In this document: piece after piece, positions 2,727-53,797 of the stretch
How positions within the stretch are numbered: the stretch's first letter is position 1
How the letters are laid out: the number at the start of each line of letters is the position of its first letter
Assembly: GCF_000143415.4 (NCBI RefSeq)
Contig: NW_003314333.1
Coordinates: 695,207-759,206 of the forward strand
DNA: 64,000 bases
DNA from: Selaginella moellendorffii
Taxonomy: Eukaryota; Plantae; Lycopodiophyta
Direction of reading: 5' to 3'
The notes under the pieces: model-generated
Told to the model about the DNA's origin: nothing
The model's input: only the letters and a program-made list of their open reading frames with translations
The model's database searches: none
Position numbers and translations under genes: made by a program

Positions 2727-4213
2727 TGTAAGCAATTAATTTTTCCATTCTACTTTAGACACCTCCGACTACTTGGAGAAGTCTCATTCACAACATCCAT
2801 AAGTCAAATTCAAGACTTGGGGTCTGCTAGCCCCAAGAATGGCATCCATGCCACTCCACCTTTGCATTTGGTCTAAGTGTTCCACGTGTCCGATCCCATA
2901 ACCAACACCCCAAGGTACCATTGACATACCAACCCGTTACGCTAAGACAATTCACCTTAGTCACACCGGTGGTTCAACACCACCTACATCGCAGTCTCAT
3001 CTCTCAAAGATTGGGGCATCCATCCATGAGTGACTATCCTAGATCCACTCCTTAGTATCCTTAAGATGCCCACAAACATGGGGAATAACCTTCCCCAATA
3101 TCCCTTTTATAATCCCCACCAAGTCCTTTTTCTATCCATAGCCGTGTTTGCTAACACTACCACTGGGACAAGGTTTACAGGCTTAACCACTAAGTCCCAC
3201 TATCCTCTGGGACTTCCTCACCACATGACCGTATCTTTGGTCATTACACCAAAGGACCACTCTTTTTTCTTTCTATTGTCTAGGACTTTGGGACAACATT
3301 TTGGAACACTGTAGCCTTATGCTAGCCTCCTAGGTACTCTCCCCACCTTCTGCCTTTGGGTACTCTAGCCATGGGCTTAGAGCGAGGTTTCATTGAGCCA
3401 CGCCGGGTATCAAAGTAGGTAGTGCCACTTATGCTTGAAGTGAAAGCATCGACCATTCGATTTCCCGAGGGAACTAGAGTCGGCTCTTGAACACTTCATT
3501 AAGCTACCCCGCTTGTCAGTTCGTATTCACTCTAACCTTTGACTTCCTAGTGGTTATTTTATTACCCAATAAATGGGTATAGCCTTCCTAAGCCAAACTG
3601 GCTCCACTAGTGTCTAACCCCCACACTCTCCCTACTATACTTTTGGAACCCCCTATAGTACAGCTCCTGCCCCCCCCCCCCTGGGGGGACGATCGCTTTG
3701 GGCTTTCACCCAACAGCCTATATTAGTATTCGGACTCTGACTCGAACTCGGTCTCAGACTTGGTCTCGGTCTCGGCCTTGGACTCGAACTCGGTCTCAGT
3801 CTTGGCTTTAGTCTCTATTCCATCTCAAACTCCATCTCGGGTCTATCTCGGACTCCATCTCGGGTCCATCTCAGACTCTATCTTAGGTCCATCTTGAACT
3901 TCATTTTGGGTCCATCTCGGACTCCATCTTAAACCTTATCTCGGACTCCTTCTCGAACTCTATCTTGGACTCCATCTCGGACACTTCCACGTGTTATGTG
4001 TTGGTCCTCTTGTGTCCCTTTTCTAGAGACTCATTTATTGCTCACTTCATGCTTGTTCCTCGAGCACTTCATTGGGAGTTCCACTCCCGCTCTCGACCTT
4101 TCAAGTTGAAGTTTTTAGTCCAAACATGTTATGCTCATTTGACTTTCACTTTAACCACTACCATATAACACCCTTTCAACTCCACTTTGGGGCTTAGGGA
4201 TTTGTGTCTCATA
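2727..4213 (-). mobile_element. Solo LTR of family A gypsy element
   Basis: TGTAAG...TCTCATA, homologous to LTR 5235-7036; 5-bp TSD TATAG at 2722-2726 and 4214-4218. Confidence 0.9.
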
Positions 4214-5234
4214 TATAGGTAAATTGGCTTTAAAACTTCATATGCATGGTGAAATCTTTAGTCATGGGGTAGCTACTATAGATTAGTCACATCACCTGCC
4301 TTTCCGTCAATGTTCCTTATTTCATTTAAAGGGTGTGACTATGTAAACAACTCTAACTATTTATTTATAGTAGTTTATCAAAACATGACCAATGGGTTTG
4401 GTTTGTGTGCTCATGAAGGTTGAGGCCTTTAGCTTCTCTCTCTATATCACCTGCAGACAGGGGTATATCATCTTTTATAAGCTGGGTGACACTGGGTGGC
4501 TAACTCCATTGATAATTTCATTGTCAATGATGGCTAAAAAGTGTCTATGTTGTAGCACATTTGTGTTAGACATAGAGGTTACCCTAACTCATTTAAGTTG
4601 GTGCATTTCTTACAAAGTATGAACACCATAAACTTTTTCTAGAGTTGTTTCTTTGGTAGTGTTCTAGACTAGAGTATGCATCGATGAGGATGTCGATCTT
4701 CCCTAAGAGGGAAGAGTGTCACAAATATGATTGCAGGTATCTAAAATTACTTATTAGTGAATCCTTTCAGATATTATTTCTTTACTGCCATGACGGCAGG
4801 AGGTCGATATTGGTAGACCCTTTATCAATCTCCACCCAAGTTAGTTGAGAAACTAGTTATTATATATATACTTATGTTGAATAAACATAAGGTAAAAACT
4901 CCCTATGTGTTTCTTGCTGAGCGTACTCAGCCCAGCATGAGAAACTTATATGCTGGCTTGCACTTGCTAATGTTGAAAACCCTTGTGATATTGAGCTTGG
5001 TCCTTCAATATTCATTAGGTGATACCTTATTATGTCCAAGACAATCTCGCTATCATGTCCCTTGTGTTGATCATGTTCGATTCTATTAGTTATTTATAAA
5101 AGTGTCTAGATTTGCTAATTTGGCATATCTATGGAATGTAGAGATTGCCTTGAACACAATGGTGTTGGTCCCATGTCCAAATTCACAATCTAACATTATT
5201 TCATATTTAATAAGTTTTAAACTTGTCATAAAGG

Positions 5235-8200
5235 TGTAAGCGACTAATTTTTCCATTCTACTTTAGTCACTTAACCACACCTCCGACCACTTGGAGGAGT
5301 CTCATTCACAACCTCCATAAGCCCAACTCAGGACTTGGGGCTTGCTAGCCCCGAGAATGGCATCCATGCCACTCAACCTTAGCACTTGGTCCCAGTGCTC
5401 CATGTGTCCGATCCCATGATCGACACCCCAAGGTACCACCGACATATCGGCCCGTTACGCTAAGGCCATGCCCATTTACCTTGGTCACACTGGTGGTCCA
5501 ACACCACCTACATTCCAATCCCGTCTCTCAAAGACTGGGTCATCCATCCATGAATGATCATCCCATATCCACTCCTTAACATCCTTAGGATGCCTACAGA
5601 CATGGGGAATAGCCTTTCCCAATATCTCTGTTCCGGTCCCCACCAAGTCCCTTTCTGTCCTTGGCTGTGTTCGCCAACACTGCCACTGGATCGAGGCCCA
5701 CCAGCCCGACCACTAAGTCCCACTATCCTCTAGGACTTCCTCACTATGGGACTGTGTCCTTGGTCACTACCCCAGAGGACTGCTCCTCTTCCTTTCCACA
5801 GTCTGGGCCTTTGGGACAACATTTCGGAACACCGTGGCCTTACGTGAGCCACCTGGGTACTCTCCTCGCCTTCTGCCCTTGGGTGCTCTAGCCATGGGCT
5901 TAGAGCGGGTTCCGTTGAGCCACACCAGGTATCCAAGTAGGTAGTGCCACCCACACTTGGACTGGGAGCATCGGCCAGTCGATCTCCCGGGGGAACTAGA
6001 GCCGGCTCTTGAACACTTCACCAAGCTACCCCGCTTGTCGGTCTGTGTTCACTCTAGTCTTGGACTTCCCAGTGGGCAGCTCATCACCCAACACTAGGTT
6101 CGGCCTTCCTGGACCAAACTGGCCTTTCCTGGCCAAACTGGCTCCACTGCAGTCCTCCCCCTTACTATACTTTTGGAGCTCACCAAACCCCCTAGGGTCT
6201 GGGAGACGAACGCTTTGGGCTTTCACCCTCTCAGGCTCCGGACTCGGACTCGGACTCGGACTCGGACTCGGACTCGGATTCGGACTCGGACTCGGGCTCG
6301 GTCTCGGTCTCGATCTCAGTCCCGATCTCGGTCTCGGTCTCGGTCTCGGTCCCGGTCTCGGTCCCGGTCTCGGTCTCGACTTCGGACTCCATCTCGGACT
6401 CCATCTCGGGTCCATCTCGGGTCCATCTCGGACTCCATCTCGGACTCCATCTCGGGTCCATCTCGGACTCCATCTCGGACTCCATTTCGGGTCCATCTCG
6501 GGTCCACCTTGGACTCCATCTCGGACTCCATCTCGGACTCCATCTCGGGTCCATCTCGGACTCCATCTCGGATTCCATTTCGGGTCCATTTCGGGTCCAC
6601 CTCGGACTCCATCTCGGACTCCATCTCGGGTCCATCTCGGACTCCACTTTGGACTCCAACTCGGGTCCATCTCGGGTCCACCTCGGACTCCACTTCGGAC
6701 TCCATCTCGGACTCCATCTCGGGTCCATCTCGGACTCCACTTCGGACTCCAACTCGGGTCCATCTCGGACTCCACTTCAGACTCCAACTCGGGTCCATCT
6801 CGGACACTCCCACATGTCATGTGTTGGTCCTTTTGGGTCCCTTTTTGGAGCCTCGCCTTTTGCTCGCTTCGTGCTCATTCCTCGAGCACTTCGTTGGGAG
6901 TTCCACTCCCGCTCTTGACTTTTCATGTCGGAGCTTTTGGTCCAAACGTGTTATGCTCGTTTGGCTCTCGCTTCGGCCACTACCATGTGGCGTCCTTCCG
7001 GCTCCACTTTGGGGCCTAGGGATTTTGTGTCTCACAACTCCACCACCCATAGACGAAGTTCGATGTCCTCATCGAACAGTAAACCCTTTCATAAAATAAC
7101 ACCCACACGTGTTACCATTTCCATCCTTGGCACCTAGCCAATCTTTGTCTATGGTTTGACACCAAAGGCTCACCATGCCTTGTTCATCCTTTAAGGAGCG
7201 TAGTCTCTCCAACTTAGAAACTGATTGGACCACATGTAATGGTTCTCTCCTTTTATTGGTTTAGTTCTCGCTAAACCTCTTAGAGACCCTTCTCTAAGTC
7301 AATCCCACTACTCCTTCTCGAATAGTCTCAATTTCCATCGGTATAACCTTTGCACTTTGGAACTTTGAATTTTGACTTCTTGGAGTCAATTTCCTAGGTG
7401 TCTCCGACACCTTGCCTTGCACCTTTTGTGCAACTCCACTTCCCATCCTAGGAAGTTCTCTACTCGAGGGCACCATCATCCTCTTTTCTATTTCGTGCTA
7501 AAGTTCTAGTTATCATACTTTGTGCTAAGGCTGTTCATGGCCCTATCATTTGGCTACCTTACCGCTCCCTCCCTTGGAGCTTCCACTTTCGCCAAATCGG
7601 AGCATTTCAGAATCCCTCCTTGGAAACACACTTCCTTTCCCGCAACTTGTTAGCGTCCAACACAATAGTGTTCCTCGCCTAACTTTGTCACTTGGATTCC
7701 TTCCAAGGGATTCCACGGCCCTATCTTGGCCACTCATCTTTTGCTCCTATCCGTTGATTGTTGCACCAAGCAACATCGAATCTCTACCTCCCTCCTTGAG
7801 GTATTGTTTCGGTTCCATAGCAAAGACTCTTCTTTGCCAAGTCCGGAGGATGTTCACCCCTAGTACGTCTCTTTAGCATCTTCTGCTATGGGCTCTATCT
7901 ACGGCCCAACTTCGTGACCCTCCCATGGGTCTTTTATAGAGACTACTTTCCTCGGACTCACTATGCCATCGCACGGACATAGTTTATTTCCCTTAGGTGC
8001 TCTTCCCACTTGGTTATCACGACCAAGCCACACCACCTTAAACAATTCAATTTCAACATTTTGAACCAGGAACTTCATTCCTTAGCCAACCAAGGACCTT
8101 GTCCTTATCTGGCCATAAGATCACCTAGTGATCTCACCTTGGCACCTTAACAGAGTTGCCAAGAGGTACTTGGTTTTCTAGACCTCCAAGTTGTTGACTA

Positions 8201-11200
8201 TAACCCTGGGGGCATCCCCCACACTTGGCGGTGCACCCAAGCTAGCCCTTACGGCCAAGGGTTCATAGCAACTGAGATTAGGTGTCCCCATCTCACTCAC
8301 CACGACCTTGGTGCCACTTGCACCAAAGTGTTCAAGTTAGATATGCTGAGCTTTCACACTAAGCAATCTAACTGTGCATCACGACTCCGAGGCATCCCTC
8401 GCTTGGCGGTGTGCCCAAACCAATCTCCCCACTGAGAGTCCATGACCACCGAAATATGAGTGTCCTCATATTCCAAACCATCACCACGCCCTAGTGATTT
8501 GGGACTCGAACCCAAGCACTAGAGGGTTGGGACTCGAACCCAACCTCCGTATATGCATCTACGGATGGCATCACACAAGATGCCTGGCGTGACTCCCCAC
8601 GCCGGTGCACCAACTTATACTCAAAGCGCGCTATAGATCATAGCTTAGGAACCTAGTTCCTCCACATTGCCAAGTCCTCTCACTTGACAAGTCTGTGATC
8701 ATGCATGGACTCCTCCATGCTCGGCCCCATGGCCCACCCTTTTTGAAGTTATCACCTTCAACTAGGGTATTGGTTCCCCCGACATGCCAATCTCGCTTGG
8801 CAAGTCCTCCGACCACTGTAACATGGTTCCTGCATAAGCGTGAAAGTCCTTGACCATCGACTTTCGTTCAAAGCCTTCTCTTTGAACACTTGGGAACTAC
8901 TTCCCTAACCTTGATAGCCTTGCCTCATGGCAAGCTTCAAGACCACGCTTCTGCTGCGCCACTCTGATTTCGCGCGTTCCATGAACCATTTACACTTGGC
9001 CTTTCTAGGTACTAAGCTACCTAGAATCGTCTTTGGGAACCTTGAAGGAACTCTGTCCCTTAGCTTGCTAAGGCCTCCCTTTTAGCAAGCCTTCCAAATG
9101 CCACATAGTCTAACATGGACAATTCCATATTTTAGACTCTCCATGGCATCACGGTTGCTAGCGGCAACACCCTCGAGCCCCCACTTGATTCTCCACTTCC
9201 AGCTGGCATAACCAACCTTGGTTATGCCCTTTGATTCCTACGGTTCGGTTCTATCCCCTTACTTCTTGCTTTTTGGCTTCACACCTTTCCTTTGGTCATT
9301 CTCCTCCAGACCAGGAGGATAGCTTCGCACTTTCTATCATGCTTTAGCAAGTATTCTTAGGGATGAACCTACCCAATAGCCTAGGGAGTGGTTCTTCAAT
9401 CCGGGTATGCTCACCTTATAATCCCACACACTGGGATTACATTGTTGCTTATGGGCCTTTACATGCCCATCACTAGCCTTGCCAAAATTCCATTTTTGGT
9501 TTTGTCCAACTCGGGTAGACAGTCCTCTCCTGTCTCCGCAACCTTGGACATTTGGATAGCACCTTCTATCCATCATTCGCTAGGGACTTAGTCCCTTGGG
9601 CTTTATCCATTGCCCTCGCGACATCAAACACCAGCTTCTGGTGTTCTAGAGTGTTCGGGTGTCCCAATGATGGCTTTCTTGACAATGAGTATTTCCTTTT
9701 ATGACATTGACTTACTATATCGCAACACAAGCAACTTATCCCCCGTAAAGGTATATCCAACTTCCCTATGCTATTAAGAAGTCTTGGGTAGCTACCATCT
9801 ACCCGTTTAACCAGTTATTTTGCACCTCTTGCTTAGTTGCCTCATAGTTGTCAAGTCCTACAACTCATTGCTTGGTGCTTTCACACCTCTATCATTATCT
9901 GGGTCACCACACTCCAACTGCATGCTTTGCGGCTTAGGCTATGCTATTCCCATTTCCATTGGGATTCCTTTAGCAAGGGGTTCTCATGAACCCACCAACA
10001 TAGCCTCAAGGTATCACACCTTGGCACATTTGGTGTCTCCACACCATCGGCTCCACGAGCCTACCTCTATGACATTTCCCCTTCGTGTCTAAGTCTTTGC
10101 CAAGACCAACACTGCTCTTTCTCATGCCAACCATCCGTTAGCACTGCACCATAGAGGTCACACACAAATTTATGTCAAAGTTGTTTTCTTCTGGGAACAC
10201 CTTTCCCATAACTTTAGCATGGCATATTTTGCCATCGATGAGATACCCTCTGTTCTCATCCTTGGATCCTATGATCCCCCCCCATCCTTTGTGGGGTACA
10301 ACACACCTCAGTCCAAATGCTTCTATCAGTCCTTTTAGGACCATCCGTTGACTCTACTTGAGTCATCCAGCAATTTTGGACTTGGTTAATCCACAGACCC
10401 GTAAGGTCCCACTTGTGAGGCACAAACTCACTGGAATACACTTCTTGCATTCCTGTCCTACTCAAAAGGACTATTTTCACAAGTGTTACTCTGACACTTG
10501 ATTTTGTTCTCTGGGGGCAACCTTTGCCCCTTAGGACTACTTGTCCATGTGATGAGAACACCAACTCATCCACTTAATACACCCCCAACTCCTGGGGTTA
10601 TTCCAGCATTTATTAGAGGTTGCCCCGGCTACCTTTTCAAGGACTTGAGTCCTCTTCCGTATTTGACCTCCCACGGTCATTACTTCTGGTCTCACATTCA
10701 TGAGCACCAACCTCAACTATATGAGGAAAATCTTGTGACTCCTTTATTGCTTTGGAGTCTTTATCTTTCCCGTGATCCCAACTGTAGTTGTTTACCACAA
10801 CTACATTAGCCAGTTTGCTAAGTCAAACGCTCATCTGGATCACATCCTCAACTCTTTGAGGAAAACCATATACTGTTCCCAAGATCCCAAAGTCGTTCCA
10901 TTATTGGCCCTTTTCTATCCACCACCTCGTTTACAAGTTCACACATGAACTGTAATGGAGAGCTATGTCTTCCCGACTTGCTACTCCTCAAGGATAGGCC
11001 CACTCCTCGGACCTTCCGATGCCAACACTAGTGGTGATATACTTGAGCACCAATAAAAGTCGGACTAAGGAACAGCTCCGATACCAAGTTGTAAGTGACT
11101 AATTTTTCCATTCTACTTTAGTCACTTAACCACACCTCCGACCACTTGGAGGAGTCTCATTCACAACCTCCATAAGCCCAACTCAGGACTTGGGGCTTGC

Positions 11201-12713
11201 TAGCCCCGAGAATGGCATCCATGCCACTCAACCTTAGCACTTAGTCCCAGTGCTCCACGTGTCCGATCCCATGATCGACACCCCAAGGTACCACCAACAT
11301 ATCGGCCCGTTACGCTAAGGCCATGCCCATTTACCTCGGTCACACTGGTGGTCCAACACCACCTACATTCCAATCCCGTCTCTCAAAGACTGGGTCATCC
11401 ATCCATGAGTGATCATCCTAGATCCACTCCTTAACATCCTTAGGATGCCTACAGACATGGGGAATAGCCTTCCCCAATATCTCTGTTCCGGTCCCCACCA
11501 AGTCCCTTTCTGTCCTTGGCTGTGTTCGCCAACACTGCCACTGGATCGAGGCCCACCAGCCCGACCACTAAGTCCCACTATCCTCTAGGACTTCCTCACT
11601 ATGGGACTGTGTCCTTGGTCACTACCCCAGAGGACTGCTCCTCTTCCTTTCCACAGTCTGGGCCTTTGGGACAACATTTCGGAACACTGTGGCCTTACGC
11701 GAGCCACCTGGGTACTCTCCTCGCCTTCTGCCCTTGGGTGCTCTAGCTATGGGCTTAGAGCGGGTTCTGTTGAGCCACACCAGGTATCCAAGTAGGTAGT
11801 GCCACCCACACTTGGACTGGGAGCATCGGCCAGTCGATCTCCCGGGGGAACTAGAGCCGGCTCTTGAACACTTCACCAAGCTACCCCGCTTGTCGGTCCG
11901 TGTTCACTCTAGTCTTGGACTTCCCAGTGGGCAGCTCATCACCCAACACTGGGTCCGGCCTTCCTGGGCCAAACTGGCCTTTCCTGGCCAAACTGGCCTT
12001 TCCTGGCCAAACTGGCTCCACTGTAGTCCTCCCCCTTACTATACTTTTGGAGCTCACCAAACCCCCCAGGGTCTGGGAGACGAACGCTTTGGGCTTTCAC
12101 CCTCTCAGGCTTCGGACTCGGACTCGGACTCGGACTCGGACTCGGACTCGGACTCGGATTCGGACTTGGACTCGGGCTCGGGCTCGGTCTCGGCCTCGGC
12201 CTCGGTCTCGGTCTCGGTCCCGATCTTGGTCTCGGTCTCGGTCTCGGTCCCGGTCTCGGTCCCGGTCTCGGTCTCGACTTCGGACTCCATCTCGGACTCC
12301 ATCTCGGGTCCATCTCGGACTCCACTTCGGACTCCAACTCGGGTCCATCTCGGGTCCACCTCGGACTCCACTTTGGACTCCATCTCGGACTCCATCTCGG
12401 GTCCATCTCGGACTCCACTTCGGACTCCAACTCGGGTCCATCTCGGACTCCACTTCGGACTCCAACTCGGTCCATCTCGGACACTCCCACATGTCATGTG
12501 TTGGTCCTTTTGGGTCCCTTTTTGGAGCCTTGCCTTTTGCTCGCTTCGTGCTCATTCCTCGAGCACTTCGTTGGGAGTTCCACTCCCGCTCTTGACTTTT
12601 CACGTCGGAGCTTGTGGTCCAAACGTGTTACGCTCGTTTGGCTCTCGCTTCGGCCACTACCATGTGGCGTCCTTCCGGCTCCACTTTGGGGCCTAGGGAT
12701 TTTGTGTCTCACA
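5235..12713 (-). mobile_element. Full-length non-autonomous Ty3/gypsy LTR retrotransposon (family A, copy 1)
   Basis: LTRs 5235-7036 and 11090-12713 (TG...CA); TSD AAAGG (5230-5234, 12714-12718); tRNA-Met-type PBS TGGTATCGGAGC on - strand at 11075-11086; PPT at ~7037-7051; ~4 kb interior with no intact ORF. Confidence 0.95.
6235..6805. repeat. Tandem array (GGACTC)n, (GGTCTC)n and GGACTCCATCTC/GGGTCCATCTC units inside LTR
   Basis: Directly visible. Homologous arrays at ~12110-12485, ~34897-35436 and ~41284-41850; eroded versions at ~3730-3980, ~14960-15150 and ~21850-22140. Confidence 0.95.
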
Positions 12714-13324
12714 AAAGGCTAATTCCTAGGATTAAAGGTGAAAGCCGAAAGCTTGTGTTCCTCAAGGGTGGGGGGGGTAGGGTTCTAAATATATAGTAGG
12801 GATAGTGGGTAGGTTGGGTATGGCCGACACACCTGAGGCATAGTCAAACTCCTATTTGTATGTTTATCCTTATTCTCCATCCGTTTGGGTCTAAGCTTAA
12901 ATTCCACACCATGCTAGCTAGTGGAGTATCCATATCCTTGCATTAAGCCACCAGTATACTAAAATTATGCTAAACTCCATTTGGCTCCGTTTTGCATACT
13001 GGTCATGGCATTAGGATGCTAGAAACTCTGGGATTGTTCCAAGTCACTTTGTGCTCATATCCCTTCACTCATTGGGCTGAACACTTGGGAGTTGTTCCAT
13101 GCTCCAGCTCCTTCACTCCTTAACTACAAGCTTGGGAGTTTGGCTTTGTTCCTTCGTTCAATGGCTAAAGGCTTTAAAACTCAAGTTCTACTCCACTGTC
13201 TTTATATATGTGGCATGTGGCATATGGCATGTTACATATGGCATATGGAGGGTTTAGATTCTACTTCATAATTATTCTATGGTAAATTACATTAGGATAA
13301 AGGGTGAAAACCACATGCACTACA

Positions 13325-15568
13325 GGATGCTCCAGAATTATGATACATAATTAAATTGCTTAGTATGAAAGTTTGGCATATCTAATTTAAACACTCTCAT
13401 GCAAATGGCATTAAGGATGTGGTGAATAAGATAGAGACACTCAATCTCTATTGCTATGGACCCTTGGCCAGAAGGGTTAGCTTAGGTGCATTGCCAAATA
13501 TAAGGGATGCCTCTAGAATTATGGTTAACAACTTAAAGGTCTGGCAAACTTAATGCCTATTGGTAAACACGTAAGGTATCAATGTGAGATCATTAAGTAA
13601 TCCTATAGCTAAAGAAAAACAAACTCCTTATTAGGTCAAAGAATAAAGTTTTTAGTTTAGAGTGTTGATTTGAACTATTAGTAATAGTGTGACTTGGTCA
13701 AAGTGACTAAATGGGAAAGACACATAGGTGAAATGAATTATGATATTACAATGGTATTATAAATTTAATAAATTAGTCTTTAAGGAAATACCTATAGAAA
13801 AGTCACAAGGTTGCGCTATAGATAAAGCCTCTAGTAGAAAATGATAAAGATATTTATTAAGGATAAACACCCTCTACATTTGGCAAAACAAAGCCTTTAC
13901 TATGGAACCAAAAAAATACCTTAAGGATGGAGGTAATGATCCTATATTACTTAATGTAATAATCAAAGGATAAGAGCAAAAGAGTAATGACCAAGAATGG
14001 GTTATAAAAATTATTGGAAGGAATCCAAATGATAAATTATTTGAGGAACACCCATATAGTGGATACTAATGGATTGTGAGAAAAGAAATATATTATTAAG
14101 GATGGATTTTTTCAAATGCTTTAATGTGGTGAAGATGAAAGTTCTAAGAGATGGAACAACAAAGTAGCTAAATAACATAGATAGCCGTAACACAAATTAT
14201 GGATGAATGAAAATTAATACCTATAGTGGCACAAAATAAAAGAGAGGATGATGGTGCCCTTAAGTAAAGGATTTCCTAGGATATGAAAGTAGAGTTTGGG
14301 CAATATGTGTAATACAAGGTGTTGGAGATACTGAGAAAATTGACTTATGAAATCAATATCAAAGTTCCAAAGTATGATAGTTATATTAATAGAGGTTGAG
14401 ACTACTTCGGAATGAATAGTAAAATTGAGATAGAGAAGGTGTTTCTAACGGGTTTAGTGAAAGCTAAACAAAAGGAAGAAGAGAACCACCACAAGTGATC
14501 TTATAAATCTCTAAGATGAAGAAACCATACTCCTTAGAGGATGGGAAAGGCATGGTGAGCCTTTGGTGGCAAACCTTTGATAAATATTAGCTTAGTGTCA
14601 AAGATGAAAATGGTAATCCATAATGGGGTTACTTTATAAAAAGATTTATTGTTCAATGAGGATATTAAACTTCATCTATGGGTGGTGGAGTTGTAAGACA
14701 CAAATCCTTAAGTCCCAAAGTAGAGTTGAAACTATATTATATGGTAGTGATCGAAATGGAAGTTTAACAAGTGTAACACATTAAGACCAAAAGCTCTGAC
14801 TTGGGAAGTTAAGAATAGGAGTGGAACTCCAAATGAAGTGCTTGAAGAATAAGTAAGAAGCAATTGATGAATGAGTCTTTAGAAAAGGACACAAAAAGGA
14901 CTAACATATGGTAAGTGTCGTGACACATGGTAAGTGTCATAACACTTGGAAGTGTCAAAACCAAGTCTAAGATAAAATTCGAAATAGAGTCCGATATAGA
15001 GTTTGAGATAAAGTTTGAGAAGGAGTTTGAGATGAAATCTAAGATGGAGTCCAAGAAGGAATACAAGATGGAGACCAAGACCGGGTCTAATATCAAGGCT
15101 AAAATTGAGACTAAGACAAAAATTAAATCCAAATCCAAATCTAAATCTAATTACTAATACAAGTCAAAAGGTGAAAGCCCAAAGTGATCATCCCCCAAGG
15201 GGAGGGCGGGGTCTTGAAAGATTCTAAAAGTATAGTAAAGAGAATGTAGGGGTTGGACTCTAGTGGAACCAATTTGGCCAAGAAAGGCTAGTGTAATCTA
15301 GGAAGGTTATACCCACATGATGGGTGATAATATAACTATTAAAGAGTCCAAAGTTAGAGTGAACACAGACAGACAAGTAAAGTAACTTAGTGAAGTGTTT
15401 AAAAGTTAACTCTAACTCCCCTAAGAGATCTAATGGTCAATTCTCCTAATCCAAGTGTAAGTGGCATTATGTACTTGGATACCTGGTATAGCTCATTAGA
15501 CTTTGTTTTAGCCACTTGGCTAGGGCACCCAAAAGCATAAGGTGAGGGGAGTACTTATGGAGGCTCAT
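13325..15568 (+). mobile_element. Old family-A copy: 3' internal region plus 5' part of 3' LTR (LTR starts 14692; continues at 23662-23880)
   Basis: Colinear with 39725-42240 of copy 2; PPT ATGGGTGGTGGAGT before TGTAAGACAC; heavy G>A erosion. Confidence 0.85.
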
Positions 15569-15785
15569 TGTAATATATATGATCATAGAATGAGATTTAA
15601 ATATACTATCACTGTGGATCCTTAGAACTTTAAAGAATAAATAAGGATTAAATAGCTACTAAAGGCTCTTTTATTAAACAATTAACCATTTTCTAGTTAG
15701 TTTAAGGGGAGAGATATAAAGTGTTCAATAAACTAAGAAAAAATTTATTAGGTATTATTGAAATTTATATACAAGAACAAACTAA

Positions 15786-16439
15786 CTAAGTTTGGTTGAT
15801 GAGGTCCCTGAGCTGCTGAATGAGCTTGGGATTGATCTGGAATGCCCTCTCGATGACAGCGTCATAAATGGGAGGATTTGATGCAAACACGGCTTTGGCT
15901 ACCTGGGTGACACTAGGATTCTGGGAGTTGAATCCCGCAAGAGCAACAGCCGGTGTCTTCCCAACGTTGAGCTGGAAGTGAATGAGACCACGCGGAAACA
16001 CAAAGAGATCCCCTGGATGCAAAGTTTGAGCGAAGAGTGTATTGTTGGTGGTGCTCACGAATCCAACATAGAGAGTTCCTTGCTGGAGGAAGAGGAGCTC
16101 GGTTCCTCGGGGGTGGACATGAGGGGGATTGACACCATATGGAGCATAATCAATCCTTGCAAAAGAGACTCCAAGAGTGTTGATTCCCGGGAATACGCCA
16201 ACATTTGCATTGGTGACTATGGATCCGAGCTTGTTGTTGGTGTTCCCGGGGTTCCTGAGTCCCTGGAACATGAAATCACTGGCTAGAGTTGCTGCAGCAG
16301 GCTTGCAAGTGAATCCATTGACGATGGTGCTGCTGTTTCCGTTGCAGACACAGAAATCCTGGAGGGCATCTTCATCTGATCCATGGACGAAAGCAATGGC
16401 ACAAATGGCAACTAGACAAATGGCTAACTTGTAAGACAT
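15786..16439 (-). CDS. Germin-like protein (cupin), secreted
   Basis: Signal peptide, QDFCV motif, germin box 1 GVNPPHVHPRGTE and box 2 GDLFVFPRGLIHFQLN; intact 217 aa ORF; TATA-like CTATATAAA ~90 bp upstream. Confidence 0.95.
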   Translation of the reverse strand: MSYKLAICLVAICAIAFVHGSDEDALQDFCVCNGNSSTIVNGFTCKPAAATLASDFMFQGLRNPGNTNNKLGSIVTNANVGVFPGINTLGVSFARIDYAPYGVNPPHVHPRGTELLFLQQGTLYVGFVSTTNNTLFAQTLHPGDLFVFPRGLIHFQLNVGKTPAVALAGFNSQNPSVTQVAKAVFASNPPIYDAVIERAFQINPKLIQQLRDLINQT

Positions 16440-16779
16440 GTTGTATCTTCACATAGATTTTGTGTTGTGATGCTACTTAATTGATGAAGAATTGAGTGAG
16501 GAGAAATGTGGAGGTCGCTGGAGTTTATATAGTACTCCAAATCTGACTTGGTCATTTTACTGGAACAGAGAACACGTTAACCAGACTTGATCAGATGTTA
16601 CATTCTATTTATCTTCCGAGGAAAGAACCAAGAAGAAGTGGACCAAGAACTGTTCCTTGAAAACGTTGTAAGGATTGATTTGGGAGGGCCATTCATACAA
16701 ACGCTGTCCATTTGACAGCTGTGAGGCTCAACAAGCTGAACCACAAGTCACAGCCGTGAGAGTTTTTGATTCGTCCTAA

Positions 16780-17560
16780 ATAGGGAAATGGTAGCGCCAT
16801 GTGTCACTCAAGGACTTTCCGCCGGCTCGGATCAGGTGAGTGATCAAGCCTCTATTGTTTCTGTGATCTTTTTCCTGCAGGAGTGTTGCGATGTTCCCCA
16901 GGAATTATAAAAGGAGGCCTGAGCTTAGCTTGTGACTCACTGTGTGGATTTTGCTCTGTTTTGATTCTGATCAATGGTGCCTGCAAAGTGGGAAGAAAAA
17001 GAAGAACAGTGTCCAGCATACACGCTCACGAAAAAGATAAGGACGAGAGCGGAAAATAATCCAACGTCTCCTCTCGAGACTGGGATGAGGACTAAACTCG
17101 AATTGATCAATCCATTTTCTTAGCACGATATTCGGCTGCACAGGTGGAAAAATCTGTACTGTGCTGCATCGTTTCTTCTGGCGAGTCGAGTGTCCCATGG
17201 CCAAATGCGCTGGTGGCGGTTTAAGCTCAGCGTGCCTTTCAGCGATGATCTCAGAACCTGGTTATTCGAGCTTGATGTATATGGGAAGAGCACCATGGGA
17301 CATCAGATAGCTGGGTTAACTGGGAAAAGTACTCGCTTGAAGGTCAAATAATTAGAGTCTATTGTCAGCGATTTGTAAGCTTCTTGCAGAAGACCACAGT
17401 AAGTGGACGGCTGGAATGCCCGATCTTCTGCTGTGGAAGGAGCAGCTGGCCGAAGTCAAGGGTCCAGGGGTCGCTTGTCCGAGCAATAGGTGGCCTGGTT
17501 TCTTATTCTCTCGGACGCTAATTTTCCAGTGGAACTTTGCAAGGTCTCACATGTGGTGTC
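16780..17560 (+). pseudogene. FAN1: Fragment of Fanconi-associated nuclease 1-like (VRR-NUC) gene
   Basis: WEEHHGT..VNWEKYSL and DHSKWTAGMPDLLLW..LAEVKGP, then frameshifted RLSEQ*; only the C-terminal part is present. Left boundary approximate. Confidence 0.75.
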
Positions 17561-17689
17561 ACTTGTGGACATTAACTTCTTTAGATTGAATCTTTTTCTA
17601 TACTTCGGCGAGACGCACGCGCAGAGGTATTTAGAACACTTCTTTGACTTGTATGTGAATTCTTTCCTTCAGGCTTTGAATTTCTGAGG

Positions 17690-18284
17690 TCAAGACATGA
17701 CAACGAGAAGCTTCTACAGAAGGCCCTTTTGCAACACCAACCAAGAATCGAACCACGTCCGCTTCAAGCTCCTGGTTTGCATGAGTTACCTTTCCAAGAT
17801 GCTTTTAGACAGGGAGAGTGATAGAGACGAGAAGAAGTTGCAAACCCGCGGCAGAGCAGATACCAGGCTTACATTTATGACTTCAATTCCATCATAACAG
17901 GCTGCGTCCAGTCTCCGGACAGTGATCAAGAACAGCCCGACCAGGAAGTATTTAGCGTGCTCAGCGAGTGCGCCAGAGAGAGCAGTAGCCACCAGCAACT
18001 CGGCACAGGTTTACTTTATGGGCCATGACTTCCACACTTCTCGGTCGTGCATCCGGGCCTTGAACTCGCCAACGGTCGAGCCTTCGGGAAACTCAAGAAC
18101 CTGCTCTCGACCATTTCCAGCTCCGAGTCGATGCAGTGCGCAGGCATCGCCACTGCGTCGTTCAAACAAAGCCATCAACCAGCAAGCACAATCCAAGAAA
18201 GGAATGGGAGCTCTAAACCTCCCTCTCGTAAATGTACGAGTCCATGAACAACTGCTGCTCCTCGAGATGTTCTTCTGGCGGCAT
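17690..18284 (-). CDS. Unknown small gene or gene fragment, possibly with a ubiquitin-like segment
   Basis: GC-richer coding-like stretch; peptide VLEFPEGSTVGEFKARMH resembles a Ubl strand-helix; exon structure not resolved. Confidence 0.3.
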
Positions 18285-18366
18285 GACTATAGGAGGTTAT
18301 GAATGTTTAGGTTAGTTTAACTTTCAATACTATAATTAATGGCTGTTATAACTAAACACAAGACCT

Positions 18367-18475
18367 ATGGCTGCTAAGTTTATGAGAACTTGGATCAATT
18401 ACGCTGGTTTTATACCAAAGTCGTTAGTGCCACCCGTGAACATATTGACTTGCCATGAACTCCCTAAGAAGTTTC
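18367..18475 (-). promoter_or_regulatory. Duplicated chitinase promoter/5' UTR remnant
   Basis: Aligns with 19303-19415 (GCTGCTAA..GTTTATGAGAACTTG, GGTTTTATAC, GCCACCCGTGAACATATTGACT). Confidence 0.75.
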
Positions 18476-18507
18476 TTACTTATTTCGAAATATTATGGAT
18501 TTTTAGC

Positions 18508-19304
18508 TTAAGCACAACCAAGGTTTTCACCTGGTGAAACACCCAACTGTGAGCAGAAGTCCCTGTAATAATTGATACGGTTTTGTGCTGGTTGTGTCTC
18601 ACTGCCCCTGCCACACTCTACCGCTCCATTGATGGCTCGAATTGTAGCTCCAAATCCTTGATTCTGTGTTATTGCGGTGTGGCAATTCGAGTTTTGCATC
18701 CAAAACCACACTGATGCCCTCCATGCAAGTAAGCCATTCTGAGCAACTTGGTCTGGGTTCTGGAGAAGGTTCATATTGAAAGCCCTTCCCGCGGCATCAT
18801 AGTTGTAATTCCTGCAGATGAAATTTTGGATTTGTACTGCATACGTTTTTCATTTCTAACTTACCAAGTGAGCTGCAGAGGACCTCTTCCATAATAAGCC
18901 ATATCGCCTGCCGGACATGAAACTCCACCTCTAGTGTCACAATAGACGTTGTTTTGGTTGATCTCTCGAATGAATTGCAGTGCTACAATCAAGTAGAAAA
19001 ACTTCAAGACATTAGTGAGAAATGGATTTTGCTATGTAAAATTACTTCCAGTCTCCTGCTTCACATTTGCAAAGTACGCAGCCAGTTCCCTCCTTTGAAC
19101 ATCAAGACTCCCTGTGCTTCCAAAAGCAGGAAAGCCATTTGCTGCAGCAATGAAATCACTATAGGTGTAGAAAGGATTGGCAACATTGGATGGGAAGAAC
19201 TGCCTAAACACAGACTCGGTTATGATGCTAGATGGGTTTGCTAGTGTGGGGGAGGGAGATCCAATGCAAAGTATAAAAGATATGATGATTGCTGCAAAAG
19301 CCAT
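18508..19304 (-). CDS. GH19 chitinase without chitin-binding domain; exons 19304-19046, 18982-18865, 18811-18508
   Basis: Signal peptide; RELAAYFANVKQETG, FIRE, YYGRGPLQLTWNYNY, WFW and GFGATIRAINGAVEC motifs; GT-AG introns restore the frame. Confidence 0.95.
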
Positions 19305-20424
19305 GGCTGCTAAAGTTTATGAGAACTTGAATGAATTTGGGTTGGTTTTATACTCTTGAAGCCACCCGTGAACATATTGACTAAAATGCCGTGTTGATGG
19401 AAACTTCCTAAGATGGAAGGTGTCTTTTATTGACTTTTCAAAATACTTTTGATTGAGGTTATGATCTTCTGTTTAAAGGTATAATATCTAGTTTCACAAT
19501 ACATTTTTATATCTAGAAATAAAATACCAATTTATACAGTTATCAATCTTAGTAAATAGAAATTAAATTTATTTTAATTAGAAAATTTTTAAAATGGAAT
19601 TTTTTGCATGATTTTTAGCTAGAATACCCTGGGACATTCAAAGATATTTATTCATCTACTGGTTGCTAGTTATTTAGATTAATATTATATTTATAGTTTA
19701 TAAATATATTATGATATCTTTATATTTACTAAGAAAGTATATCATCACTATTGGCAATGACATAAATTGAAATTTAAACTCAAGACCTACTATACACATA
19801 AAAGGGATTATTATGAATCTATACTAAAATTAAGTTTCTAGATTAAGTCATGAATTTATACTAAAATTATATTTCTATATTAGCTAGAGGTTGGATCAAA
19901 GCCTTTATATAAATAGAGTTTTGATAATTTTGTATTAGAGTGTTTAACATAAGTTTAACTTTTCTTTTCCATTTTTTATTATTTTATTAATAGTTTAATC
20001 ATCTCCCTTCCTCTCAATAGCAATTTTTTAACAGTTTAAACATTTTGAAATCAATGATTTTCTCAAATTTGTTTTTTCAGCTCTAGTTAAATCAGAATAC
20101 TCTATAGAAGTCATACCAAGCATTAAGAGCAATCCAATACTATACTTAATTTGCAGCTCTACTAAATTATCAACACCAATTGATTTAAAACCAAAATTTG
20201 GTATGCCAAAAAAGTTTGATGCACATGGTCCAAATTTCATAACTTCCTTAGCCAAGTCAGATTTCGAAGTGCCATGCAACTTGATTGATATTCCATAACA
20301 TAAAATCATTTTTTATTTTCTATTATTTTAATATTTTAATAGTATTTTCATTTTTTTGATATAAAATTATTCAAATAGTTCATTGTGAAGTATAATATAT
20401 TAAATCCAAATTTAAAACTCTCAC

Positions 20425-21205
20425 TGTGAGTGCATGAAATATGGAAAGGGAATACAGAAAATGTGTACAACAATTAGCCCAAAAACCCTAGCTTATATAC
20501 AGGAGCGAATAGTCTGGATAGAAACCAATCTGATGGCTACTAAAATCCCACTATGCTAATATTAATATACGGCATCGTAGCCATATACTTAGACCTCATA
20601 TCATCCCCTCCTCTTAGAATAATGGAAGACCATCAGGGTTCTCTCATAGATGGGCTGGGATCTGGAGGAACGTCAGGAGGAGGCATTAGCAGGTCTGTAG
20701 GTGGTATCAGTTGTTCTTGATCCTTTTGTATGAAGCATTTCAACTGTTGCATATGTATAATTTCTGGAGGATCGGCCTGCTGGATGTCATGCCGAACCTC
20801 ATAAACTTGTGGTTCAACTTGCCACAACACCCGATATGGTCTTTTCCACTGAGCAAGGAGCCCCTTACATAAACCACGTACCATAAGATGGGGAAAATAA
20901 ACTAACACTAAGTCATCCACTTTGTACTCCACAGGTGAATGATGATGGGAGTTGTAGCGCCATTGTTGTCCCACTTGTATGCAGTTTAAATGTTCAATAG
21001 ACTCTACTTAGACAAGTGGAAGAATGCTCATCAAATACTGATTCCACGACCTAACATTAGTAATTAGTGGCAATTGCAAAGGTAAACCCAGCTCTGTTAA
21101 TAATATTGGATCATGACCATATAGGAGTTTATATAGTGAAGCACTAATAAAGCTCTGCACCCCTGTGACATATGCATACCGAAGAGACGGCAAATAACCA
21201 TCCCA
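20425..21205 (-). mobile_element. 3' fragment of a Ty3/gypsy element: integrase C-terminus, PPT and short LTR (20425-20600)
   Basis: LRYAYVT..SLYKLLYGHDP and YKVDDLVLV..LLAQWKRPYRV..YEV (integrase GPY/F-like tail); PPT AAGAGGAGGGGATGA; LTR resembles 31507-31689. Confidence 0.8.
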
Positions 21206-23055
21206 ATATGGGGAACAACCTTCTCCAATATCCCTTTTTTAGTCCTCACTAAGTCCCTTTTTGTTCATGGCCATGTTTACCAACACTGCCATTGAGTCAA
21301 GGCCTACAGGCCCAAACACTAAGTCCCACTGTTCTTTAGAACTTCCTCAACATGTGGCTATATCCTTAGTCACTACACCAGAGGACTTCTCCTCTTTCTT
21401 TCCATAGTTTGAGACTTCGGGATAACATTTCGAAACACCGTAGCCTTACGCGAACTTACTCTCCCCACCTTCCACCTTTGGGTGCTCTAGCCATGGGGCT
21501 AGAGCGAGATTTTGTTGAGCCATGCCAAGTATCCAAGTAACCCACGCTTGGACTGGGATCATCGACCATTTGATCTCCCAGGGGAGCTAGTTCCAGCTCT
21601 TGAACACTTCACCAAGCTACCCCGCTTGTCTGTTTGTATTCACTTTAACTTTGAACTCTTCAATAGAGATATCATCACCCAAGACATGGGCATAGCCTTC
21701 TTAGGTCACATTGGCCTTTCCTAACTAAATTGGCTCCACTAGGGCTTAACCCCCACACTCTCCCTACTATACTTTTAGAACCCCCTGCAGCCCCCCTTTG
21801 GAGGACGATTGCTTTGGGCTTTCACCCAACAGCCTGTATTAGTATTTGGACTTAGAGTCGGGCTGGGACTCAGACTCAAACTCGAATGCAGACTTGGACT
21901 CGGTCTCAGACTCGGACTCGGTCTCGGTCTCAAACTCCATCTTGGGTCCATCCCAGACTCCATCTCAGACCCATCCCAGACTCCATTTTGGACTCCATCT
22001 TGAATCCATTCTGGACTCCATCTTGAGTCCATCTTGGACTCCATCTCGGGTCCATTTTAGACTCCATTTTGGACTCTATCTCGGGTCCATCTTGGGTCCA
22101 CCTTGGACTCCTTCTCGGACTCTATTTCAAACTCCTTCTTGGACACTTTCATGTATCATGTGTTGGTCCTCTTGTGTCCCTTTTCTAGAGACTTACTTAT
22201 TGTTCGCTTCATACTTGTTCCTCAAGCACTTTGTTGGGAGTTCCACTCCCACTCTTGACCTTTCAAGTCGGAGCTTTTAGTCCAAACATATTATGCTTGT
22301 TTAGCTTTTGCTTTGGCCACCACTATGTGGTGCCCTTTTGGCTCCACTTTGGGGCTTAGGGATTTGTATTTCACAACTCCACCACCTATAGACGAAGTTT
22401 AATGTCCTCATCAAAAGATAAACTATTTTATAAAGTAATATTAACATGTATTACCCTTTCCATCCTTGGCACCTAGCCTAATGGTTTGACACCGAAGGCT
22501 CACCATGCCTTGTCCATCCTCTAAAGAGCATAAGCTTTCCAACTTAAAAGACTCATTTGACCATTTGTGGTGGTTCTCTCTTTGTATTGGTTTAGTTCTC
22601 ATTAAACCTGTTAGAGATACCTTTTCTATCTCAATTTCACTACTCATTCTTGAGTAATTTTAGTTCCCATTGATATAACCTTTGCATTTTGGAACTTTTA
22701 ATTTTGACTTCTCGGAGTCAATTTCGTGGGTATCTCTAACACCTTGTATTACACATTTTGTGCAACTCCACTTCCCCATCTTAGGAAGTTCTTTACTCAA
22801 GGGCACCATCATCCTCTTTTCTATTTTGTACTACCTTTGGCACTACGTTCTAGTTATTATAATTTATGCTAGGGCTTTCCACAGCCCTATCATTTGGCTA
22901 CTGCTCCCTCCCTTGGAATTTCCACCTTCACCAAATCAGAGCAATTAGGAATCTATCTTTGGAAACACATTGCCTTCCCACAATCCGTTAGAATCCAACA
23001 CATTAGTGTTCCTAGCCTAACTTTGCCATTTGGGTTCTGTCCCATGATTCCCATG
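21206..23055 (-). mobile_element. Truncated family-A fragment (partial LTR to 22375 plus 3' internal region)
   Basis: Colinear with ~5600-7720. Confidence 0.85.
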
Positions 23056-24169
23056 TTACATGTGGTATCAAAATAAATGATATGGGTTCGATTGCCATTG
23101 ATTAATGGCTACTTAAAATATATACCCTTGAGTAAAGTATATTCTTACCCCTAAATTTGAAATCGTATGTATTAAGCATCCATGAGTATGTCCTTTGTTT
23201 TATAGAGCACCTATGGATGAAGGTATCCACTCAAGACTACAGTACAAGTGGATGATTAGTTGTCTCACATAGAATAACTAATCTACATAATGGAAGAATT
23301 AGTAAATTCAGTGCAAAAATAAAAGTGTTAGTTCCCTTTGGTTCAATAATGGTTGTTAGTTAGTAATTAATAAAGACAATAACTAGTTTACACAATGAAA
23401 TGATTGGTAAATTTAATGCGGAAATAGAAGTGTTAGTTCCTCTTGACTTAATAATAGTTGTTAATCAGTAGTTAATAAAGACTTTGACATCTCTGAAGTG
23501 GGGGTGAGTGTAGCACATATGATTATGGGATGAAATTTAGATATACTATCACCATAAATCCTTAGAACCTTGGGGGATAAATAGGGATAAAATAGCCATT
23601 AAAAGCTTTTTCATCAAGTAATTATGCCTTTTCCAATTAGCTTAAGGGGGGGTGCATTACACTCACATAGAGCTATAATGTTTCAAAATGTCGTCCCAAA
23701 GCCTTGGATTGTGAAAAAGAAGAAAAGCAATCCTCTTGTGTTATAGTGAGGAAGTTGCAAAGCCAATGGGATTTAGTGATCGTGCCTTTAGGCCCTAACG
23801 TAGTGGTGGTATTGGTGAGCATTGTTGTGGATAGAAAAGGACTTAATAAGGACCGAAAAAGGGATATTTGGGGTGGGGATAATTATAATTTTTAAGATGG
23901 GGAATGATTTTCTTTTAAGCCATTCCTATATTGAAGATTCCAACTTTCCAAGAAGCTTATGGACAAAAAAATATAATAATGACTATAATTTTTCTTAGTA
24001 GTTTATATACTAAGTTTTAGTTTTGAGAATGAAGTTTATTTTTTATTTTTATTTTTATTTATTACTAGTCATTCCAATACTCTAAATTATTGAAATATTA
24101 GTCTTGAAAATGAGACTTCATAATCATAGCTTATGAATAGATAAACTTCTAGAATTTTAAACAACTCCC

Positions 24170-24890
24170 ATAAACTCCCATAAGCACCTAGTGGGGATTC
24201 ACAAATACACACCTAGTAGGGATTCACCACAAGGATATACCTTGCTCTTCTTATATGGGAGGATTGTGAAATAGAATTTTTCATATGAATTAATATATAA
24301 ATTACAAATACCATAGAAAGTTTTATAAAGTAGATTTATTAGTGCCTTTTACCATATTGTTCATTTCTTCATTTTTTTTACTCTAAACTATTATTTTGGA
24401 CATACTAAGAGCATTTTTATCAATAGTGATAATGGTTATCACATTCCTAGATAGGTAATAAAAACTAGGACCAAGGTTTTGAAACTATGATCTAGATACA
24501 AGATCAAAGTCACTTGGTTTGAAGTAAAGAAAGTCAGCAAACCAACATGTGTGACTTTATGTCAAGGTCTTTTATAAAATTAAGAATAAATAAAAGATAC
24601 TATAGAATATTTTTCATTACTTTTGTATTCATATGTATGAACATATAGGGATGAATTCTTCTTGCCCTTCTCTTCTTACTCACTCATCAAAAAGATTGTC
24701 CCATATTAAAAACAAGCCAAAGTTTCCTCACCAGCAAATGCTCTTGTCGAGCTCCACTTCCTCTCTCAATCAGGCACAGAAAGAAGCTTGAAGTGGTAAT
24801 CATGCAATCTCAACATCCCTAGTCCTACCCACAATACTAATTAATGTGTTGTGTGTGCTATACCAAGGTGTCAATAGCAAGTACTCTAGT
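24170..24890. repeat. Local segmental duplication; second copy at ~26421-26618 joined to 30598-31108
   Basis: Near-identical stretches (e.g. GGACCAAGGTTTTGAAACTATGATCTAGATACAA); the second copy is interrupted by the element at 26619-30597. Confidence 0.85.
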
Positions 24891-24956: not shown

Positions 24957-25488
24957 TGTAATATATGTGATTATAGGATGAGATTTAGATATACTATCAC
25001 CACAGATCTTTAGAACTTTAGGGGATAAGTGGGGATAAAATAGCCATTAAGGGCTTTCTCATTTAGCAATTGCCCCTTTTCCAATTAGTTTAAGAGGAGA
25101 GAGATAGGGTGCATTACATATGGTATGTGGTATTGATTAATGGCTATTTATATTCCTACCCCTAAATTTGAAATCATATATATTAGGCCACCATGCATAT
25201 ATCTTTCCTTTGTATAGACAAAAGTATCCACCATGAGAGTGTGGTATAGGTGGATGATTAGTTGCCTTGCATGGAATGGAATAAAAGGATTAGTAAATTT
25301 AGTGTGGAAATAAAGGTATTAGTTCCTCTTAGCTCAGTAGGGGTTGTTAATAAATAGTCAAAGAGGACATTGATATCTCCAGAGAGGAAGGTGAGTGTAA
25401 CATACATGATCATGAGATGAGATTTAGATATACTTTCACTGTGGATCTTTAAAACCTTAGGGGATGAATGAGGATAAAATAGCCATTT
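24957..25488 (+). mobile_element. TRIM family B copy (5' LTR 24957-25118, internal region, truncated 3' LTR from 25396)
   Basis: TGTAAT...CATTACA LTR, TGGTAT PBS-like motif, purine tract AGAGAGGAAGGTGAG. Confidence 0.75.
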
Positions 25489-25901
25489 CTAGAGTTGTTT
25501 CCTTGCCGGTGGTCTAGACTAAAGTATGCATCAATGAGGATGTTGATCTTCCCTAAAGAGGGGAGAGTGTCACGAATATAACTTTGGGTTAACTGCCTTT
25601 TTATAATAGTTTATCTAAACCTTACTTTCTTTACTCATGAGGGTTGGGGCCTCTAGCTTTTCTCTCTATGTCCCTACAGACAATGTTTCGTTGGATTAAC
25701 ACAAGACCGTGACATGTGAATAACTCCAGTGAAAATCTTTGACAAGAACAATCAACTATCCTAGATGATAGTCAATCATCGTTAATGATTGCTAGATGCA
25801 AAAACCTACTTGAAAATTTTAAATTATGCCTCCCCTTTGTCATTTTCTTAGAACTATAAGAAATATCAATCATTTTGATAAGAATTTTAATAAAAGGCTT
25901 T

Positions 25902-26096
25902 TGTAAACTCATGAGTTTGGACTTCCCAGGAGGTCACCCAACCCAATACTATTCAAACCCAAGGACATTTAACCCTAAATATCCTAAGACCCTTAACCAA
26001 TTAGAAAAAAGGGTGCACTCTTATTCATGAGCCCTTTCACTCTATATTTGAACCCCTATGAATCGTCTCTTAAGTCATTCCCTTTGGTTGCTTATA
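25902..26096 (-). mobile_element. Solo LTR of Cassandra-like TRIM
   Basis: Reverse complement of the 36854-37047 LTR; TSD GCTTT (25897-25901, 26097-26101); lies within a family-B LTR fragment ending at 26162. Confidence 0.88.
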
Positions 26097-26618
26097 GCTT
26101 TCTCATCAAGAAATTGCCCCTTTTTTAGTTGGTTTAAAGGGAGAGAAATAAGGTGCACTACAATATGCTAAATTATTTATCATTTTGATAAAAACCTACT
26201 TGACTATATATATATTCTTTCTACCCTTGTGCCAACTTTTTAGTGAAATAGAATGTAGGGAAATATAGACCCTATTATAGTGGCAGAGCATGTCATAAAT
26301 ATATAGGCATTCTCTTGTGCAAAATTATCTTTTAGTTTTGGATATATATATAGACTTGATTTTTTATATGATATTACTTTTGAGTCTTTTGAAAGATTTT
26401 GATTTCTATTATTATTCACGAACTCCCATAAATTCCTAGTGGGGATTCACGACAAAAACATACTTTACTCTTCTTATATGGGAGGATTGCAACATATATA
26501 AGCAAGTAGAGTTTTTTATATGAATTAATATATAAATTATAAATACCATAGAAAGTTTTATCAAGTAAGTTTATTAGTGTTTTTTGGCATATTATTCATT
26601 TCTTCATTTCTATTATAT

Positions 26619-50990: not shown

Positions 50991-51037
50991 TATAGCTTAC
51001 ATTGTGATTTCAGCTTGAAAATCCAGATTTGGTATGA

Positions 51038-53752: not shown

Positions 53753-53797
53753 ATGGCGTCGGTGGAAGACTCTTTGCATCTGAGGAGGGGCGGCTAG
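53753..53797 (+). promoter_or_regulatory. Upstream ORF (MASVEDSLHLRRGG*) in ARF 5' leader
   Basis: ATG in context ACAATGG; stop 13 nt before the main ATG at 53811. Confidence 0.5.

Follow-up and report, generated by a model that had tools for sequence, protein, structure and literature searches.

In a 64,000-nucleotide stretch of contig NW_003314333.1 of the lycophyte Selaginella moellendorffii (this whole 64-kb stretch is called the window below), I found a 7.3-kb block of DNA with an intact germin-like gene and an intact, intron-containing chitinase gene of family GH19 lodged inside a terminal-repeat retrotransposon in miniature (TRIM), which itself lies inside the 5' long terminal repeat (LTR) of another, old retrotransposon. 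The block is probably genomic DNA from elsewhere that was joined into the TRIM, by then decayed, during the repair of a chromosome break. The outer element belongs to what is here called family A, a repeat family found by comparing the window with itself and having LTRs rich in tandem repeats; the host copy is element 3, the two full-length copies in the window are elements 1 and 2, and a further partial copy is element 4. The interrupted TRIM is TRIM1, and TRIM2 is the copy of the same TRIM family with which it was compared. From left to right the layers are as follows.

13351-14691, minus strand: interior remnant of element 3 (the host family-A element), truncated on the left, about 71-72% identical to the interiors of elements 1 and 2
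14692-15568, minus strand: 3' portion of the host family-A 5' LTR (element 3), placed by alignments to other family-A copies
15564-15568, no strand: CTCAT, left copy of the target-site duplication (TSD) of TRIM1, at a site with a single CTCRC in six reference LTRs
15569-15725, plus strand: 5' LTR of TRIM1, 76-79% identical to three other LTRs of its family
15726-23055, no strand: inserted genomic block, interrupting the colinearity of TRIM1
23056-23508, plus strand: remainder of TRIM1, comprising the last LTR bases TTACA, the primer-binding site TGGTATCAAAA, the interior and the purine tract
23509-23661, plus strand: 3' LTR of TRIM1, free of cargo
23662-23880, minus strand: 5' portion of the host family-A 5' LTR (element 3), beginning with the right TSD copy CTCAC at 23662-23666
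24957-25487 and 26097-26162, plus strand: TRIM2, with a TSD of its own (ATATA/ATATG)

The outer layer can be rebuilt without a scar. When the host flanks were joined in silico (13300-15568 to 23662-24600) and aligned by BLAST to other family-A copies, the alignments to four of these copies ran unbroken across 15568/23662. In a multiple alignment, all of the six reference family-A LTRs (6/6) carry a single pentamer at the insertion point (CTCGC, CTCAC, TTCGC or CTAGC); the host LTR has CTCAT, then 8.1 kb, then CTCAC. As read from this alignment, CTCAT/CTCAC is a genuine 5-bp TSD from one integration of TRIM1. The boundary between LTR and interior of element 3, at 14692/14691, reads ...TCTTACA followed by ACTCCACC.

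The inner layer can be rebuilt in the same way. Members of the TRIM family have LTRs of 153-162 bp (TGTA...TTACA), a tRNA-Met-type primer-binding site (TGGTATCA) and a purine tract (GAAGTGGGGGTGAG), and it is these short LTRs, the primer-binding site and purine tract, the 5-bp TSDs and the lack of coding capacity that place them among the TRIMs. The interior of TRIM1 is short and non-coding, and carries a 105-bp tandem duplication. Across the 7.3-kb block TRIM1 is colinear with TRIM2: its 5' LTR ends in ...AAAGTG(TT), at 15723/15725, and the element resumes at 23056 with TTACA. Bases derived from TRIM1 are certain up to 15723 (GTG), the TT at 15724-15725 being ambiguous, and measured against the family consensus GTGCAYTACA, TRIM1 is without CA only. 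The tetranucleotide TGTT stands both at 15722-15725 and at 23054-23057, which against the consensus amounts to 2+2 ambiguous bases. A first-pass annotation of the same DNA had already proposed that a family-A LTR breaks at 15568 and becomes colinear again at 23662, that CTCAT/CTCAC is its TSD, that a TRIM is split between about 15725 and 23056 with the rest running to 23661, and that TGTT occurs at both inner junctions; each of these proposals holds up under the alignments described here. The TRIM LTRs are old, judging by their sequences; the two LTRs of TRIM1 stand at a Kimura two-parameter distance of 0.31 and those of TRIM2 at 0.21, and transitions greatly exceed transversions.

The inserted block contains the following features.

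15786-16439, minus strand: germin-like gene, intact, single exon, 217 amino acids (Cupin_1, E=1.4e-47)
17356-17684, plus strand: C-terminal fragment of FAN1 (VRR-NUC), frameshifted (VRR_NUC at 25.6 bits, cut-off 23.8)
18508-19304, minus strand: GH19 chitinase gene, intact, three exons (19304-19046, 18982-18865 and 18811-18508)
20633-21193, minus strand: C-terminal scraps of an integrase from a different LTR retrotransposon (Integrase_p58_C, E=7e-5, short of the gathering score)
21205-22375, plus strand: 5' LTR of element 4 (the second family-A element), starting at about position 372 of the younger LTR copies
22376-23055, plus strand: first 680 bp or so of the interior of element 4, about 80% identical to 41052-40399 of element 2

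Base composition changes abruptly at the left block junction, in CpG and in GC alike. The genic part of the block has a CpG observed/expected ratio (o/e) of 0.48-0.81 and a GC content of 44-50%, against 0.0-0.26 and 25-34% in the host, and the 5' LTR of TRIM1 has a GC content of 25% and a CpG o/e of 0. The frame of the germin-like gene is uninterrupted and covers positions 2-148 of the 151 in Cupin_1; its open reading frame (ORF) translates exactly into a protein annotated for S. moellendorffii on a 981,669-bp scaffold, its signal peptide was judged by eye only, and 60 bp separate its stop codon from the left block junction. The chitinase was searched exon by exon, its full length being judged through a database protein and not from a joined model. 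Its exon translations fall at residues 1, 88 and 127 of RefSeq XP_002986254.2 ('chitinase 6', 226 amino acids), which is encoded, like the germin match, on the 981,669-bp scaffold; the exons align to positions 20-64, 82-116 and 118-232 of PF00182, and exon 3 aligns end to end with 3hbd, a spruce class IV chitinase (E=3e-32). Both introns are GT-AG, the catalytic domain is of class IV type without a chitin-binding domain, and both catalytic glutamates are present (QETG and FIREIN). A role in defence would be assigned to the germin and the chitinase from their family names only.

The rest of the block is debris. The FAN1 scrap matches residues 943-984 of human FAN1 in the PDB (E=0.02-0.04) and continues as ...FPVELCKV in another frame; this second frame (17490-17684) had no match in the PDB. 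The AT-rich interval 19305-20600 (GC 26%) may be the decayed 3' end of the element that left the integrase scraps. Because the host LTR starts at the same position, the start of the element 4 LTR is probably a genuine terminus from an integration that took place at the source of the block; at the right block junction the interior of element 4 breaks off arbitrarily. Measured on the younger LTRs, both of these old family-A LTRs thus have their start near position 372, and it seems that in a younger family-A subfamily the LTR was extended at its 5' end by some 370 bp. That element 4 might be a snap-back copy made from the host LTR was also considered and ruled out, since the element 4 LTR has no TRIM at the site that is occupied in the host LTR. 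Searches with the cargo genes by tblastn and blastn gave no second copy within the 64-kb window. In listing an intact germin-like gene, an intact intron-containing GH19 chitinase, a FAN1 fragment and transposon pieces (here the integrase scrap and a family-A 5' LTR with interior) as the cargo, the first-pass annotation was correct throughout.

The nesting also gives the order of events. Because the outer LTR and the TRIM are each rebuilt colinearly and there is one clean TSD, the block entered after the TRIM, as had been proposed earlier from the nesting. Both junctions lie at one point of the TRIM and its two halves share one orientation, so that the block was inserted; an origin by inversion was considered and is ruled out on these grounds. 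The cargo comes after U5 and before the primer-binding site, a position from which reverse transcription would have copied it into both LTRs; since the 3' LTR has none of it, the block was not retrotransposed. The chitinase has kept its introns, and thus no retrocopy is involved. The earlier suggestion that retrotransposition was unlikely is borne out by both observations. It is this position inside the TRIM, and not a gene tree, from which the direction of movement is taken. At the ends of the block I found no terminal inverted repeats (TIRs), no Helitron, CACTA or Mutator-like (MULE) ends, and no target duplication beyond the ambiguous TGTT. The block starts in the germin 3' untranslated region (UTR) and stops midway through an LTR element, and its end points are thus as arbitrary as would be expected of a chunk of chromosome. 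Exact restoration of target continuity, together with borders that have neither transposon termini nor a transposase-type target duplication, is what break repair would leave.

The history probably ran as follows. TRIM1 integrated into the 5' LTR of an old, non-autonomous family-A element. The chromosome would have broken at the boundary of U5 and primer-binding site of TRIM1, itself old and decayed by that time, and repair would have joined in a contiguous 7.3-kb chunk of a germin/chitinase locus, including that locus's own transposon debris. The joining would have been non-homologous, with at most 2 bp of the TRIM lost and a possible microhomology of 2-4 nt, and its route may have been either templated filler synthesis, of the type of synthesis-dependent strand annealing or microhomology-mediated end joining (SDSA/MMEJ), or the capture of a free linear or circular DNA fragment. 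The repair pathway, the choice between copying and cut-and-paste, and the identity of the donor are points that I infer. If the divergence of about 5% in the chitinase protein is a guide, the insertion is old, and both block genes are still intact.

The relatives of these two genes point to a probable source. At an identity of at least 90%, the germin falls in a cluster of 14 members on 8 scaffolds and the chitinase in a cluster of 17 S. moellendorffii members. The block germin is 96-97% identical to three copies on an 845,143-bp scaffold and three on a 470,017-bp scaffold. The nearest chitinase, XP_002985070.2 on a 1,132,267-bp scaffold, differs at 4 of 226 residues (98.2% identical), and the next-nearest are on the 845,143-bp and 470,017-bp scaffolds (94.5-95.6%). 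One germin and one chitinase cluster member are also found on a 797,443-bp scaffold. Since the nearest relatives of both genes are on common scaffolds, it seems that the two came jointly, as DNA, from a germin/chitinase array; this was probably the array that the 845-kb and 470-kb scaffolds now carry, or its ancestor. In the chitinase tree, the window and 1.13-Mb copies (support 83/84) are sister to the 845k/470k clade (95/93), and the joint clade has support of 100/100. The germin tree is a star with no resolved branches, and a homologous-protein search with the 77-residue FAN1 scrap gave no candidate annotated scrap on the donor scaffolds.

The 98.2%-identical chitinase on the 1.13-Mb scaffold fits an allelic copy, in an assembly that I take to include both haplotypes (as I understand Banks and colleagues to have reported in 2011). 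No cluster germin is recorded on that scaffold; if it holds the allele, its germin may be broken or unannotated. The insertion is probably common to both haplotypes, and if the 1.13-Mb copy is indeed allelic, the insertion would be older than the haplotype split and no empty TRIM would be expected there.

Near-identical germin-like and GH19 chitinase genes share the 845,143-, 470,017-, 797,443- and 134,442-bp scaffolds, where many of the models are partial, and this suggests that a mixed tandem array of the two families has spawned dispersed copies. Scaffold groups that have both families number at least three (845k/470k, 797k and 981k/1132k). That the germin/chitinase pair is a cassette dispersing repeatedly in S. 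moellendorffii, through recurrent patching of breaks or through an unrecognised vehicle, is a tentative idea and on present evidence an unlikely one. The block germin has five private residue changes relative to all 13 of its cluster relatives. Two of these, R32C and D33N, lie side by side in the motif FCV(R/A)D, which is otherwise conserved; both are CpG transitions and could reflect either early methylation-driven decay or a change of function.

TRIM2 has an insertion of its own. Its 3' LTR is interrupted by 609 bp (25488-26096), with AAGG replaced and no target duplication. The right 195 bp of this insert is a reverse-oriented LTR about 89% identical to that of a Cassandra-like TRIM at 36854-37446, and the left 94 bp matches 4636-4728 at 88%. 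Break repair, and not transposition, may have placed this insert too, which would make it the second such case in a TRIM LTR of this nest.

Other histories could have put the block where it is. Several separate rearrangements, such as two successive insertions or a duplication followed by a deletion, would suit a block in which genes are mixed with pieces of two unrelated transposons, and the adjoining TRIM2, also with an insertion that lacks a TSD, speaks of a nest that was repeatedly broken. Such a history, however, calls for at least two breakpoints no more than 2 bp apart in the TRIM, and the boundary between the integrase scraps and element 4 resembles an ordinary LTR terminus brought from the donor, so I consider it quite unlikely. 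If the block were all or part of a gene-carrying DNA transposon (a Helitron, Pack-MULE, CACTA or similar element) that transposed into the TRIM, the pairing of germin and chitinase across scaffold groups could mean that the two move as a unit. This is clearly improbable for a block that has no TIRs, no Helitron site between A and T with TC...CTRR ends, and no target duplication longer than the ambiguous TGTT, that ends in a gene 3' UTR and the middle of an LTR element, and that would carry whole genes with promoters and introns, an unusual cargo.

Transposon nests are also prone to misassembly, and a chimeric join might have set the gene block inside the TRIM. It would, however, take two misjoins at one base of the TRIM, in a window that is free of gaps (0 runs of N in 64 kb), and the 98.2%-identical chitinase stands on a different scaffold, which makes an artefact very improbable. 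Finally, Witte and colleagues reportedly described, in 2001, plant TRIMs that carry pieces of host genes, and TRIM1 might likewise have retrotransposed with its cargo already aboard. Reverse transcription would then have left cargo in the 3' LTR as well as in the 5' one, and the 3' LTR has none; the chitinase has its introns, and 7.3 kb would be an extreme load for an element of about 0.75 kb. A gene-transducing TRIM is thus hardly credible here.

The repair of a break by a piece of genomic DNA, which I favour, has several points to answer as well. The TGTT microhomology is short, just 2-4 nt, and ambiguous. The two LTRs of TRIM1 are 76% identical to each other as against 84% to TRIM2, and so are not closest relatives; the LTR comparison has 4/4/8 informative sites, dominated by alternative CpG decay (TG versus CA), and sisterhood was not recovered. 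This non-sisterhood is largely due to CpG homoplasy, and with LTR sisterhood uninformative, it is the TSD and host colinearity, both of them strong, that speak for a single insertion of TRIM1. The window chitinase is sister to the array clade and not nested in it, in a tree that gives no direction. The donor is a candidate deduced from protein paralogues that share scaffolds, so that copying, colinearity with the source and microhomology at the source are all putative. Both junctions, moreover, are read from the assembly sequence.

Repair of this kind is an established mechanism in plants, and the closest parallels come from grasses, in which genes changed place when double-strand breaks were repaired with filler DNA (Wicker, Buchmann and Keller 2010, described in PMC3445842). 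As far as that description goes, the S. moellendorffii block resembles the grass cases in being a kilobase-scale fragment with whole genes and gene scraps, in a non-ancestral place inside transposon sequence, and in junctions that are non-homologous, share a few bases at most and show no transposon termini. It differs in that it comes from a lycophyte and its donor is deduced from protein paralogues, whereas the grass cases rest on species comparison, with donor and target both seen.

Filler DNA inserted at junctions of non-homologous end joining (NHEJ) is said to have been described by Gorbunova and Levy in 1997. Filler primed from short homologies is also known at NHEJ and synthesis-dependent MMEJ (SD-MMEJ) junctions (review PMC7156093). 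Like such filler, the block sits at a break where very little of the target (2 bp) was lost and where each junction has a short repeat; experimental filler, however, is usually tens to hundreds of base pairs long and often templated in cis, whereas the block is 7.3 kb and has no template in the 64-kb window. TRIM1 is like gene-carrying TRIMs and transducing LTR elements in having host genes between its LTRs, but unlike them its cargo precedes the primer-binding site and its 3' LTR is clean, so that the cargo arrived after integration and is no mobile unit. As in the tandem arrays of germin-like and chitinase genes of plants, both genes belong to multi-copy, near-identical families on few scaffolds; unlike an array member, the block copy is a dispersed singleton in a transposon nest.

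That nest occupies about 2.7-43 kb of the window, and ordinary genes begin at about 50 kb. The CpG o/e is 0.88 in the gene-dense flank (50000-64000) and about 0.2 in the nest. The other family-A copies found by self-comparison, and the genes of the flank, are these.

2726-4211: family-A solo LTR
5231-12714, plus strand: full-length family-A element, LTR pair 92.9% identical
34665-42849, minus strand: full-length family-A element, LTR pair 94.5% identical
55702-56805, plus strand: AUX/IAA-like ORF
57412-59178, minus strand: acyltransferase with EF-hands
59706-61559, plus strand: PPR protein, 617 amino acids
62803-63978, minus strand: cation-efflux/ZT-dimer transporter

The two full-length elements lie in opposite orientation and are 87% identical to each other, and their LTRs, of about 1.8 kb, are filled with tandem repeats of 12, 23 and 35 bp. 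Elements 3 and 4 are the two older partial copies in the window. The first-pass annotation had called the outer LTR 'gypsy', a label that found no support. The interiors of both full elements (4-4.6 kb) contain no ORF of at least 130 amino acids, the ten interior ORFs that were searched against Pfam matched no family, and no gag-pol with the order reverse transcriptase, RNaseH and integrase, by which Ty3/gypsy is recognised, was found in them. Family-A elements look non-autonomous and similar to large retrotransposon derivatives (LARD-like), with membership of gypsy unproven.

What the block offers is a clean relocation, resolved to the base on both sides, of a multi-gene segment into a datable stack of transposons, with both genes surviving. 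It reveals no new mechanism; it extends to a lycophyte one that was described in grasses. It is also a natural test of whether genes that have landed in methylated repeat DNA remain unmethylated and expressed. Selaginella has had no whole-genome duplication, and its new gene copies come from local or segmental events (PMC5750206). If the germin/chitinase pair did prove to be a dispersing cassette, working pairs of secreted-defence genes would be seeded into transposon nests in a lineage that lacks whole-genome duplication.

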